From: Mytilus trossulus
Lineage: Eukaryota
Direction of reading: 5' to 3'
Assembly (NCBI RefSeq): GCF_036588685.1
Contig: NC_086377.1
Location: forward strand, 45,694,001-45,758,000
DNA: 64,000 nucleotides
Notes under the pieces: generated by a model
What the model was told of the DNA's origin: nothing
What the model saw: only the letters and a program-made list of their open reading frames with translations
Database searches by the model: none
Shown here: in pieces, positions 11,981 to 64,000 of the stretch
Numbering within the stretch: the first letter of the stretch is position 1
Layout of the letters: each line of letters opens with the position of its first letter
Program-made: the position numbers and the translations under genes

Positions 11981-13070
11981 GGACTACAGTCCAATACTGT
12001 CTTTAGTTGTACTTTTTATGGACTACAGTCCATTAATGTCTTTAGTTGTACTGTTTAAGGACTACAGTCCATTACTGTCTTTAGTTGTACTGTTTTTATG
12101 GACTACAGTCCATTAATGTCTTTATTTGTACTGTTTAAGGACTACAGTCCATTACTGTCTTTAGTTGTACTGTTTTTATGGACTACAGTCCATTAATGTC
12201 TTTATTTGTACTGTTTAAGGACTACAGTCCATTACTGTCTTTAGTTGTACTGTTTTTATGGGCTACAGTCCATTAATGTCTTTAGTTGTACTGTTTAAGG
12301 ACTACAGTCCATTAATGTCTTTAGTTGTACTGTTTAAGGACTACAGTCCATTACTGTCTTTAGTTGTACTGTTTTTATGGGCTACAGTCCATTAATGTCT
12401 TTAGTTGTACTGTTTAAGGACTACAGTCCATTAATGTCTTTAGTTGTACTGTTTAAGGACTACAGTCCATTAATGTCTTTAGTTGTACTGTTTAAGGACT
12501 ACAGTCCAATACTGTCTTTAGTTGTACTTTTTATGGACTACAGTCCATTAATGTCTTTAGTTGTACTGTTTAAGGACTACAGTCAATTACTGTCTTTAGT
12601 TGTACTGTTTTTATGGGCTACATTCCATTAATGTCTTTAGTTGTACTGTTTAAGGACTACAGTCCATTACTGTCTTTAGTTGTACTGTTTAAGGACTACA
12701 GTCCATTACTGTCTTTAGTTGTACTGTTTTTATGGGCTACATTCCATTACTGTCTTTAGTTGTACTGTTTTTATGGGCTACATTCCATTAATGTCTTTAG
12801 TTGTACTGTTTTTATGGGCTACATTCCATTACTGTCTTTAGTTGTGCTGTTTAAGGACTACAGTCCATTACTGTCTTTAGTTGTACTGTTTTTATGGGCT
12901 ACATTCCATTACTGTCTTTAGTTGTGCTGTTTAAGGACTACAGTCCATTACTGTCTTTAGTTGTACTGTTTTTATGGGCTACATTCAATTACTGTCTTTA
13001 GTTGTACTGTTTTTATGGGCTACATTCCATTACTGTCTTTAGTTGTACTGTTTTTATGGGCTACATTCCA
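11981..13070 (+). repeat. 39-41-bp minisatellite (~27 units) immediately after the stop codon
   Basis: unit ggactacagtccatta(a/c)tgtctttagttgtactgttt(aa/ttat). Confidence 0.95.
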
Positions 13071-39423: not shown

Positions 39424-39496
39424 TCCGATGTGGTCTAGTGGTTAGGATTTCTGGTTTTCCACCCAGACGGCCCGGGTTCGATTCCCGGCATCGGAG
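39424..39496 (+). tRNA. trnE-TTC: tRNA-Glu(TTC) with an extra C in the anticodon loop (probable sequencing error)
   Basis: ggttttccaccc versus consensus ggttttcaccc; lies in the error-rich contig end. Confidence 0.75.
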
Positions 39497-40121
39497 CTTT
39501 AATTTTTTGTGATTGGAGGAGACAAATGTAAAAAGTCACGAAAAAGATATGCAGGATTCGACATACTCTCAGAGGCGAATTCATTGCAATTGTTTCTCGC
39601 AACGTTCGTATGTTATCTTGCAGTTTGCATCTGTCGCTGATGATTATGTCTTTACATGAGACTGACTGACTGAATGAGATGGGTTACCATCACACCTGCA
39701 AAAGAATGTACTTTAGCAAATAATGACTCTATGTTTAAGAGTCATGTTGATGTTTTATGCATTTCTTGTCATTTAGTCAGTTGTTATGACATTATCCCCT
39801 CGGGATATAAGTTAGATACGATAACGTAATTCCCCTGTGTTTGCCACTCTCTACGATTCCACTCAATTGCTAAAAATGGTCGCACCGGAGCCTTTCACTC
39901 CTGGCACACGTATAAAGCGCGTTCTCAACAATTTATTTGTATCTTATTCAAGATTGACCTCTACGTAAAGAGAGGAGACGCGTTACATTTGAAATTATGT
40001 CATCAAATGAATTTGTTTTTTACAGCAATGCCCACTATATATACGTGGATGATATGATTATGTGTCGCGAATTCCACTGTCCTCTTATCAATTGAAAACC
40101 TTGAATGAGGCAAAAAAGAAA

Positions 40122-40856: not shown

Positions 40857-40956
40857 NNNNNNNNNNNNNNNNNNNNNNNNNNNNNNNNNNNNNNNNNNNN
40901 NNNNNNNNNNNNNNNNNNNNNNNNNNNNNNNNNNNNNNNNNNNNNNNNNNNNNNNN
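40857..40956. other. assembly gap (100 N)
   Basis: run of exactly 100 N, typical of a gap of unknown size. Confidence 1.
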
Positions 40957-61393: not shown

Positions 61394-61464
61394 GCATCGG
61401 TGGTTCAGTGGTAGAATGCTCGCCTGCCACGCGGGCGGCCCGGGTTCGATTCCCGGCCGATGCA
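61394..61464 (+). tRNA. trnG-GCC: tRNA-Gly(GCC)
   Basis: identical array copy; last one before the retrotransposon. Confidence 0.97.
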
Positions 61465-61474
61465 TTTCTTTTTT
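61465..61474 (+). terminator. Pol III terminator (T-run) after tRNA-Gly; an equivalent run follows every copy
   Basis: TTTCTTTTTT immediately after the discriminator A. Confidence 0.8.
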
Positions 61475-61693
61475 CTTATCTTTGTCACTTTCTAAAGGGA
61501 CTTCCGGTTTGACTTCCATGATGTGCTGACGTGTTTTCATCAGAGAGTGTAATCCAGAAGATATTTAGTGTACCCGCAGGCCATCAAGTTTTGGTGGCCT
61601 GCTATTGTTGAAGTTGCTGTTCCAAGTCAGGTATATTCTGAACTTTTGATTGTTATTTTTGAATTTTGAGTGACTTTAGACTTCCCCTTCGCC

Positions 61694-63097
61694 ATGTCTG
61701 GTGAGAGGGGAGGCCGTCTTTTAAAAGAACTGACATTAATTGTCGATGTTGCAGACAACAAGAAGGTTGGTGCTAATAGTATTATAGAAGAAGCTGAGGT
61801 TTTGTGTGGAGAAGGAAATGTGTTAGCTGTGGTACCCAGAAGTGGTAACTTATATGAAATAACTGTAGCAAATGGTGACGCGGCTGATGAACTCAGTAAT
61901 GGTCCTTTTGTAATTGGTTCAACGAGATATAATTGCAAAGCGATATATTCCAAAGATAGAGTTGTAAGCTTTATGCACTTGCCGGTCTTTATCTCTGATG
62001 ATGTGATTAGGGATAAGTTGGAAGCATATAATGTTGAATTAAAATCCCCGATAAAACAACACATGTATGATGGTACGAGTGTGACCGACGGAACTAGGTA
62101 TGTTGTGGTTAAATTTCCGCCAAATATATCAAGTCTACCGTACACCATGAAGTTTGATTTAGGTAACAATCAACATGAATACATAAGAGTCAAACACGAC
62201 CACCAATCAAAGGTGTGTTCGAATTGCTTGTCACCCAATCATTTGTATCTGAACTGTCCAAACAATAAGTGTTATCAGTGTCAGAGTTTTGGACATATTT
62301 CCAAATATTGTGAAAGCTCCAAATGTATTAAATGTGGATTTTATCCTCGTAGATGTAAGTGCGAGAAGTCAGATAATTGTACTGCCTCTGAAAATCCTGA
62401 AAAAAACGACGAAAAAAAAGACACAGAAACTAAACCAAAACAGCGTGATACCAATGAAAACGAGCATAACGATGAATCCGAACAACCCCTCCAAAAGAAA
62501 AGCCGAGTTGAAAATGACACACCTACAAGTGAAACGTTAGAGAAATCTAAACCCGTTATTGACAATTTAAATGCCGATACCGTTATAACCGTTGAAGTAC
62601 ACAACAATGCAGATACCGTTATAAACGTAGATAAACATAACAATGATGAATCCAATGGTGACGAAATAAATATAATCGAGACTGAGATGTGTGAAACAGA
62701 AAAACCGTGTGAAACAACGACGACCGAGGTTGCTGATGAAGCAGTTGATAATGAACTTGATTTACTTATTGATAATGACAATGTTGTTAATTCTTTTGAT
62801 AATAATGTGCCCAGCCCTGGGGAGATATCTGAAAAGGGGGGTACAGATGTTGTGTGTGGTAAAGAGTCAGAGGACATGGAACACAAAGAGTGTACCATGA
62901 CCTCTGACCCTGATGTATCTATTGACAAATTGAACTCAGAAAATGAGTCTTTGGTTGAAATGTCTGATGAAGAAATGGCTAATGAATTAGTGAAATATGG
63001 TGGTAGAGCCAGACGTAATCGCATTGTTGTTAGGCCAAATATTCCATATGTTAGAAGACATTCTGTCGGTAATAAGTCGAGTCCCAAAAATACTTAA
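61694..63097 (+). CDS. retrotransposon ORF1p (gag-like nucleic-acid-binding protein with CCHC zinc knuckles), 467 aa
   Basis: gccATG start; CSNCLSPNHLYLNC and CYQCQSFGHISKYC (CX2CX4HX4C), a third Cys cluster CIKCGFYPRRCKC, acidic low-complexity C-terminal half. Confidence 0.9.
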   Translation: MSGERGGRLLKELTLIVDVADNKKVGANSIIEEAEVLCGEGNVLAVVPRSGNLYEITVANGDAADELSNGPFVIGSTRYNCKAIYSKDRVVSFMHLPVFISDDVIRDKLEAYNVELKSPIKQHMYDGTSVTDGTRYVVVKFPPNISSLPYTMKFDLGNNQHEYIRVKHDHQSKVCSNCLSPNHLYLNCPNNKCYQCQSFGHISKYCESSKCIKCGFYPRRCKCEKSDNCTASENPEKNDEKKDTETKPKQRDTNENEHNDESEQPLQKKSRVENDTPTSETLEKSKPVIDNLNADTVITVEVHNNADTVINVDKHNNDESNGDEINIIETEMCETEKPCETTTTEVADEAVDNELDLLIDNDNVVNSFDNNVPSPGEISEKGGTDVVCGKESEDMEHKECTMTSDPDVSIDKLNSENESLVEMSDEEMANELVKYGGRARRNRIVVRPNIPYVRRHSVGNKSSPKNT

Positions 63098-63142
63098 TTT
63101 TTCACTTTCAAGGGACAACTTATTTGGTATATTTTTTTCTTG

Positions 63143-64000
63143 ATGGTTCAGTGTGTTTCCATCAATGTTAATGGTTTGTTAGATGTTGCTAAATTTATAA
63201 AGTTGTGTGCAATCTGTTCTGAAAATAGATATGATATTGTAGCTTTACAGGAAACCTTTTGGAACCCTGATTTTATTGTTGAAAACAAAAAACATTGGAA
63301 TGGTGAAATTTTTTTTTCATGTTCAGATACAAAAAGACAAGGAGTAGCATTTCTTGTTAGTCCAAAGTACAAAAATTATGTCACTGAAATCAAAGGTTTT
63401 GATGGTAGATTTATTTATATTCAACTTGAAGTTGATAACAAAATTATCGACATTGTAAATGTATATTGTCCAAATGTCGTCAATGAAAGAGATCTGTTTC
63501 TGAAAAAAGTAAATGATAATATACCAAAGTCGGATGATTTGATATTGCTTGGTGACTTCAATCAATCACTATCCCCATTGGATAGGGTTGGAAAACATTT
63601 TGAAGATAAAGCTTTTAAATCGCTTAATAATTTATTAGATAGCTTTAACATTTATGATGTGTGGCGCGCTCGATTCCCAACCTCACGGGTATTTTCTTGG
63701 AGACGTGTGATCGAGAACAAATTAGTCCAGAGTCGGATCGATTATATTTTCATTTCTAAAATGTTTACATCGTTCGTTAAAAATGTGTATTATAAACACA
63801 CAGCTTTTACGGATCATTCGTTTGTTGTATTAAATATCGATTTTTCTTTAATCGAACGCGGGCCGGGTGTGTGGATTTTCAATAATATGCTCCTGGACGA
63901 CGAAGTGTATGTTGAAAAAATAAACAATTTAATTATAAACGAAAAGAACTGCCGACTTTATAATGAAGCCCCATTAATTTGGATAGATAATTTAAAATAT
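63143..64000 (+). CDS. retrotransposon ORF2p, APE endonuclease domain (partial, open to window end)
   Basis: MVQCVSINVNGL...DIVALQETFW...GVAFL...VNVYCPN...LLGDFNQ...DVWR...SRIDYIF...FTDH...RGPGVWIFNNMLLDD: the complete APE catalytic motif set, no stop in 286 codons. Confidence 0.95.
   Translation, partial: MVQCVSINVNGLLDVAKFIKLCAICSENRYDIVALQETFWNPDFIVENKKHWNGEIFFSCSDTKRQGVAFLVSPKYKNYVTEIKGFDGRFIYIQLEVDNKIIDIVNVYCPNVVNERDLFLKKVNDNIPKSDDLILLGDFNQSLSPLDRVGKHFEDKAFKSLNNLLDSFNIYDVWRARFPTSRVFSWRRVIENKLVQSRIDYIFISKMFTSFVKNVYYKHTAFTDHSFVVLNIDFSLIERGPGVWIFNNMLLDDEVYVEKINNLIINEKNCRLYNEAPLIWIDNLKY

Follow-up and report, generated by a model that had tools for sequence, protein, structure and literature searches.

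Sense-oriented integration of a mussel LINE clade within tRNA and 5S rRNA genes, at a site probably set by the Pol III initiation complex

A 64-kb stretch of Mytilus trossulus DNA (C5:45694001-45758000; hereafter the window) ends within a long interspersed nuclear element (LINE), the 5' 2.5 kb of which (61498..64000, plus strand) lies inside a tandem array of tRNA genes. Analysis of this LINE revealed that it is a full-length, recently transposed L1-group retrotransposon of the type lacking long terminal repeats (non-LTR), and that it belongs to a diversified clade (44-100% identical within the genome in the second open reading frame, ORF2) integrating in sense orientation into genes transcribed by RNA polymerase III (Pol III). 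Altogether, the junctions, the copies and the relatives described below make it likely, in our judgement, that members of this clade integrate inside Pol III genes at a site set by tethering to the Pol III initiation complex.

The LINE spans 5,810 bp (window-equivalent 61498-67307; L031:498-6307) and extends beyond the end of the window. Its 5' untranslated region (UTR; 61498..61693, plus strand) begins with (G)GACTTCCGGTTTGACTTCC, a terminal motif that opens all copies and the related families as well, with 1-3 additional bases ahead of it at several junctions, and its 3' UTR ends in ...ttgaatgagaaaaaaa with a short A tail. ORF1 (61694..63097, plus strand; ATG at 61694, stop at 63095-63097) encodes an uninterrupted protein of 467 residues, in which two CX2CX4HX4C knuckles (residues 175-188 and 193-206) and a degenerate third one are followed by an acidic low-complexity tail; a search of ORF1 against Pfam gave no match. 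ORF2 begins at ATG 63143 with an apurinic/apyrimidinic-type endonuclease (APE) domain (63143..64000, plus strand) and is open to the window end, beyond which it continues to window-equivalent 66979, giving 1,278 residues from the ATG within an open frame of 1,293 codons. Numbered along this 1,293-codon frame, Pfam assigned the APE domain (Exo_endo_phos) to residues 21-230 (E=1.9e-13), the reverse transcriptase (RT; RVT_1) to residues 525-766 (E=1.4e-35), and a C-terminal CCHC/zf-RVT motif to residues 1108-1166 with an E of 6.3e-5 and 24.0 bits, slightly below the cut-off of 27.5 bits. The residues C1148, C1151, H1160 and C1165 are invariant in an alignment of 13 homologues. A PDB search demonstrated that ORF2 is collinear with the structures of L1 ORF2p (E=2e-81 over residues 19-885), whereas R2 proteins matched in the RT region only, with an E of ~1e-21. 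The LINE shows the features of the L1 group, namely an APE followed by an RT in ORF2, L1 ORF2p as its closest match, the C-terminal Cys-His motif, the CCHC knuckles of ORF1, a poly(A) 3' end and target-site duplications (TSDs).

ARAGORN found two tRNA-Gly(GCC)/tRNA-Glu(UUC) arrays in the window: a type-1 array with a period of 1425 bp, in which tRNA-Gly is on the minus and tRNA-Glu on the plus strand, and a type-2 array with a period of 1101-1105 bp, in which tRNA-Gly is on the plus and tRNA-Glu on the minus strand. In the type-2 array, all 19 plus-strand tRNA-Gly(GCC) genes are followed by an identical 33-bp 3' flank, tttcttttttcttatctttgtcactttctaaag, which ends in ...cactttctaaag. Past this flank, 18 of the 19 units read taccaactggcaatg, and the 19th reads ggacttccggtttgac from position 61498. 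The target gene upstream of this 19th flank is an intact tRNA-Gly(GCC) (61394..61464, plus strand), recognized both by ARAGORN and in the sequence. In the type-1 unit, the flank past tttctttttt differs from that of type 2. These observations bear out what had been noticed in an earlier reading of the window made from its letters alone (the sequence-only reading): a switch from the type-2 consensus to a LINE with an open CCHC ORF1 and an open APE ORF2 at 61497|61498, placed 33 bp past tRNA-Gly on the same strand, with the 18 equivalent sites empty and the type-1 unit devoid of the type-2 flank.

The 3' end of the LINE revealed a different insertion site. The sequence-only reading had located the insertion in the spacer, and proposed to look beyond the window for an RT, a 3' tail, a TSD and resumption of the array, which would then start again at taccaactgg. 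The RT, the A tail and the TSD are all present, but the array resumes inside tRNA-Gly, at about position 22, reading ...(aa)tgctcgcctgccacgcggg, followed by the rest of the tRNA, the 33-bp flank and taccaactgg. Local alignment showed that the 5' and 3' flanks of the LINE share a TSD of 83 bp (83/83 identical): the upstream copy (61415..61497, plus strand) comprises tRNA-Gly from ~nt 22 to its end plus the 33-bp flank with its T-run terminator, and the downstream copy lies at window-equivalent 67305-67387 (L031:6305-6387). The first, bottom-strand nick of target-primed reverse transcription is marked by the poly(A) junction; therefore, the priming nick of the window LINE lies inside tRNA-Gly, after ~nt 21-23. 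The spacer junction at 61497|61498 is the second, distal cut, namely the far end of the 83-bp TSD. The upstream tRNA-Gly is intact because the TSD spans the remaining 3' two thirds of the gene and the terminator, and a 5'-truncated tRNA-Gly fragment remains downstream of the LINE.

The 3' UTR of the window LINE is present at only five loci in the 1.3-Gb genome. The four other full copies are 99.98, 98.95, 98.27 and 93.7% identical to the window copy, and ORF2 is uninterrupted in three copies. The copy on C1 is inserted in a 5S rRNA gene of an array with a 790-bp period, its 3' flank starting from 5S nt 28 (TSD of 274 bp), and a second copy on C5 (66.97 Mb) lies in tRNA-Gln(CTG) after nt 21 (TSD of ~25 bp). 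The copies on C7 and C22 each adjoin a tRNA-like head at the equivalent point, after TGG plus 3/4 nt, with TSDs of ~33 and ~3 bp, respectively. All five copies share the orientation of the target gene, and the spacer used at the window is used by none of the other four. Two copies on different chromosomes, in unrelated targets, differ by a single mismatch in 5,809 bp, in agreement with the earlier description of a young, intact L1-group APE element with open ORFs. DNA sequencing runs under four organism labels show a high word share of the LINE; in a sister taxon, samples of three RNA runs yielded 1, 4 and 15 reads on it, traces that indicate at most weak transcription there. Judged from its sequence, the LINE appears young and plausibly active. 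A partial copy at C8:50086456-50096455 (L041) comprises the first 1,034 bp of the LINE, starting 79 bp downstream of a tRNA-His gene, with unrelated sequence as the remainder; no 3' junction was found for it.

A protein search with ORF2 in the same genome revealed many intact relatives of 44-57% identity, clustered at few loci. One relative, termed element B (66% nucleotide identity; window-equivalent 71043-76931, C5:45765043-45770931, minus strand), lies 3.7 kb past the end of the window LINE in the same array, and is inserted at 21|22 of tRNA-Glu(UUC) with a 15-bp TSD; its ORF2 is broken into pieces of 748 and 576 codons. The 3' flanks of 32 relatives were taken, of which 29 were resolved (L131, L146 and L151 were left out, as were the truncated copies C8 and C1b from the junction count). 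In 28 of the 29, the sequence runs from the family tail through poly(A) into a Pol III gene in sense orientation. Adding the five copies of the window LINE and element B, 34 of the 35 resolved 3' junctions adjoin a Pol III gene in sense orientation, and the targets span 18 tRNA isoacceptor types (read from the anticodon 12 nt past the junction) on more than 10 chromosomes. From position 22 onwards, the relatives join tRNA-Thr (TGT, CGT and AGT), Gly(CCC), Glu (TTC and CTC), Gln (TTG and CTG), Arg(CCT), Asp(GTC), Val(CAC), Ile(AAT), Leu(CAA, with intron), Lys(TTT) and Trp(CCA); off this position, they join Asn(GTT) from G19 and His(GTG) from nt 10. Further targets are one tRNA-like sequence and three 5S rRNA genes, from nt 28/29. 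Since the poly(A) end meets tRNA position 22 or 5S position 28 in sense orientation, the strand that is cut and serves as primer is in every case the template of the Pol III gene. Tabulating the flanks of the other copies, as the sequence-only reading had proposed, revealed no scatter over unrelated random sites: the copies sit in Pol III genes or at tRNA-like heads.

Outside this genome, homologues of 33-40% identity are found in other molluscs, such as Patella with 37% identity. As a control, no tRNA gene was found on 60 metagenome contigs encoding relatives of 27-34% identity, and two contigs of record JYMV01 encoding 43%-identical relatives adjoin tRNA-Thr(AGT), tRNA-Tyr (from nt 22) and tRNA-Lys. 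On one JYMV01 contig (JYMV01051942.1; L051), the 5' flank ends in tRNA-Lys at ~nt 38 and the 3' flank begins at tRNA-Tyr nt 22, which may be an assembly join of two copies or a rearrangement. Back in the type-2 array, two further relatives occupy tRNA-Glu units (C5:45787898 and C5:45805623), and the next tRNA-Glu carries at 21|22 a ~40-bp stub of 3' tail and poly(A), an extreme 5' truncation (L048:500-560; C5:45.787 Mb, minus strand).

The cut positions, tRNA 21|22, 5S 27|28 and tRNA-His 9|10, all lie within the gene. The 5S cut at 27|28 (gttgaaaaca|ccggtt) falls at the same nucleotide at five loci in two families, and has no sequence in common with the A-box site of the tRNA genes; the A box of 5S is located elsewhere in the gene. 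In the tRNA-His array, six junctions of three families with different tails are found at 9|10 (gatc|gtatag) and one at 21|22, where the canonical GGTTA|GTA is present, yet used only this once. Comparison of the upstream regions showed that the start of a TATA-like box (TATAT, TATAA or TAAATA) lies 53-55 bp ahead of the cut in seven of 12 targets, namely Gly, Glu, Thr-TGT, Asp, Gln-TTG, 5S and His, of which 5S and His are the informative ones because they depart from position 21|22; the distance becomes 51-53 bp if ambiguous A's are counted as tail. In two more targets it is 51 bp. Compared with the other tRNA genes, tRNA-His has its TATA-like box displaced upstream by a further 12 bp, a displacement equal to the 12 nt by which its cut is shifted. 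The distance to an upstream landmark of the TFIIIB type is conserved where the in-gene position varies, which argues for tethering to TFIIIB or to the Pol III initiation complex.

We propose that the reference point for the site would be the Pol III initiation complex, either TFIIIB bound to the upstream TATA-like box or the transcription start, and not the DNA sequence. The ribonucleoprotein of the LINE would probably be tethered to this complex, from which the cut would be positioned ~53-55 bp from the TATA-like box, roughly at +25 from the transcription start. The bottom (template) strand is nicked after tRNA ~nt 21 or 5S nt 27 and primes reverse transcription, and a second cut at a variable distance downstream yields TSDs of variable length. 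For the window copy, this gave the 83-bp TSD, with the whole tRNA-Gly rebuilt upstream and the 5' junction left in the spacer. The survival of the LINEs would rest on the very high copy number of the arrayed tRNA and 5S genes.

A second explanation, which we regard as rather unlikely but the most serious contender, is a sequence-specific endonuclease in the manner of Tx1 or R1: the APE or an accessory DNA-binding domain would read the 3' half of the D-loop/A-box (GTGGTNA) and cut just after it, with 5S and tRNA-His as secondary sequence matches. Such an endonuclease would fit the GGTNA that precedes most tRNA junctions, as well as the Tx1-clade elements, which are described as target-sequence-specific via their endonuclease (PMC4494074, PMC3706591). 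It fits poorly with the 5S site, which is unlike the tRNA site and yet is cut at the same nucleotide by two families, with the preference of three families for gatc|gtatag over the GGTTA|GTA available in tRNA-His, and with the bases downstream of the cut, which vary freely.

Several observations weigh against a site measured from the initiation complex. An endonuclease reading the A box would explain the majority of the tRNA sites, as these share GGTNA before the cut. Three targets deviate from the common spacing: tRNA-Arg with 45 bp, Gln-CTG with 39 or 61 bp and Thr-AGT with 58 bp, and the TATA-like boxes were called by eye or with a loose matrix in AT-rich DNA. One relative (C4:53.48 Mb) is inserted in non-tRNA DNA with a clean 19-bp TSD; its target site matched no Rfam family, and a TATA-like box is found 51 bp from its cut. 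Among 26 U6 small nuclear RNA (snRNA) genes, a copy number too low to be informative, no poly(A) junction was found. In addition, some paired insertions with identical flanks (on C3, C31 and in 5S on C8) are possibly array duplications and not independent events, and we infer the tethering step from the geometry of the sequences. Despite these points, we still favor tethering to the Pol III initiation complex.

The two remaining explanations are highly improbable. In the first, the window LINE would represent a Dewa-like family specific for the spacer of the Gly/Glu array, inserting 33 bp downstream of tRNA-Gly. The 5' junction in the spacer and the intact upstream tRNA-Gly would suit it, but the 3' junction lies inside tRNA-Gly, which leaves the spacer junction as the end of the 83-bp TSD, and the other four copies, whose flanks lie in 5S, tRNA-Gln and tRNA-like targets, refute specificity for this spacer. 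Equally hard to credit is a non-specific L1-like element that survives by selection only in redundant arrays, or that was spread by segmental duplication of arrays, to which the C3, C31 and C8 5S pairs would conform: selection cannot give nucleotide precision and a single orientation at 34 of 35 junctions in 18 tRNA types on many chromosomes, poly(A) and TSD are individual to each junction, and copies differing by 1/5,809 bp occupy unrelated targets on different chromosomes.

The TSDs vary greatly in length: ~3, 25, 33, 83 and 274 bp in the family of the window LINE; 13, 14, 15, 15, 172 and ~608 bp in the B family; and ~120 bp in a family of 56% identity. The second cut falls 3 to ~608 bp downstream of the first, commonly 13-15 bp. 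Short TSDs split the tRNA gene and long ones restore it, and therefore the target gene is restored only sometimes. The earlier claim that no tRNA gene is damaged holds at the window, owing to the long TSD, but not for relatives with TSDs of 13-33 bp, which split their targets. Sparing of its targets is not a consistent feature of the clade, and redundancy of the arrayed genes is the likelier reason why the clade is tolerated. Along the same line, the proposal of a site-specific family using this array as a safe harbour was correct in part: the LINE is target-specific and resides in arrays of multicopy Pol III RNA genes, but it is restricted neither to the Gly/Glu array nor to its spacer, with copies in 5S, tRNA-Gln and tRNA-like targets and on other chromosomes. 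The longest duplication, an unusually long TSD of ~608 bp, is a direct repeat starting from tRNA-His nt 10 at a B-family LINE (C8:49883351-49883969; L161/L158, and L136).

Functionally, the mussel LINE most resembles the dictyostelid TRE5/TRE3/NLTR elements and the yeast elements Ty3 and Tj1. The dictyostelid TRE5-A, TRE3 and NLTR-A/B are L1-group non-LTR elements that target tRNA genes via the Pol III machinery, with ORF1p of TRE5-A binding TFIIIB, and they insert ~48 bp upstream, 2-6 bp upstream or 40-150 bp downstream of the gene (PMC5911963). They share with the mussel clade an APE-type LINE organization, the use of any tRNA gene whatever its sequence (for TRE5-A also 5S) and a fixed orientation. 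By contrast, the mussel clade cuts inside the transcribed region, lives in an animal host and produces TSDs of up to several hundred bp. As in elements tethered to Pol III, many unrelated Pol III genes (18 tRNA types, 5S and tRNA-like heads) are targeted at a set position and orientation, but the nick lies in the gene, whereas those elements integrate outside the transcribed gene. For Ty3 and Tj1, which likewise use tRNA and 5S genes, TFIIIB/Pol III dictates the exact distance at which they integrate (PMC5911963); the two differ in being LTR elements with an integrase, and insert 1-10 bp upstream of the start, compared to ~25 bp downstream for the mussel LINE.

By descent, the nearest relatives of the mussel LINE are probably the Tx1-clade elements Dewa (tRNA-Leu spacer), Mutsu (5S) and Keno (U2 snRNA), each described as specific to one sequence (PMC3706591, PMC4494074). 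They are all animal L1/Tx1-group APE elements in arrays of multicopy small-RNA genes; however, going by those descriptions, they differ from the mussel LINE, one family of which, even among near-identical copies, inserts into many tRNA types and into 5S at a position-defined site. The site of Dewa in the tRNA-Leu spacer (PMC3706591) follows a different logic from the in-gene site of the window LINE, whose priming junction lies in the gene body and whose clade uses many tRNA types, and the 5S specificity of Mutsu is not shared either, as families with copies in 5S also have copies in tRNA genes. Target-specific insertion as in Tx1 is seen at 34 of 35 junctions, with a gene class and not one sequence as the target. 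A survey of bivalves lists Tx1 among 11 LINE clades, with L1 proper unlisted (PMC10294476). Similarly, Dada DNA transposons insert within tRNA, 5S and U6 genes, frequently inside the A box (nt 8-13) or close to it (PMC8869645, PMC3706591), but they have a DDE transposase and TSDs of 6-7 bp, and each family is specific to one gene by its primary sequence. In a search that ran outside Repbase Reports and subscription journals, we found no published LINE whose cut falls within tRNA and 5S genes at a site defined by position.

In a broader reading, on which we are evenly divided, an animal LINE clade would use the Pol III pre-initiation complex as a ruler, so that every Pol III gene of type 1 or type 2 would be a target irrespective of its sequence; this would be the first in-gene, complex-measured integration of a non-LTR element, and may be the ancestral logic behind Dewa and Mutsu. 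Targeting via the Pol III machinery is known in yeasts and social amoebae, always beside the gene, and an in-gene measured cut in an animal, if true, would be a further convergent solution. It would also offer a natural in vivo probe of the geometry of the Pol III complex, each insertion marking a nucleotide relative to the start, and, its genomic address being defined, a protein-guided system for RNA-templated insertion. Moreover, the thousands of arrayed tRNA and 5S genes would act as a sink, helping to explain how mussels tolerate many active LINE families. In genome annotation, it should be borne in mind that a tRNA gene found split, or a 100-600-bp duplication in a tRNA or 5S array, can be the footprint of a LINE.

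Some minor features accompany these arrays. The 9-mer GACTTCCGG, which equals the 5' terminus of the LINE families, occurs ~42-50 bp upstream of every 5S gene in the array at C1:26.29 Mb (L002/L033); it could be there by chance, as a promoter element in common, or as a relic. The U6 snRNA genes form a tandem array of 26 copies at C10:26478967-26510823 (L169-L171) with spacings of 722 and 1161 bp; two of its units, 5,337 bp apart, enclose an insert of ~4.2-4.6 kb that has no poly(A) end and is joined at U6 ~nt 16, possibly a DNA transposon of the Dada-U6 type. In the window, a run of 100 N (40857-40956) separates the type-1 from the type-2 array, and ARAGORN reported a type-1 tRNA-Glu copy (39424-39497) with a four-base "anticodon" (ttcc), a variant with a one-base insertion. 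A tandem repeat unrelated to the LINE spans 11981-13070, with ~27 copies of a ~39-40-bp unit and higher-order periods of 80 and 119 bp.

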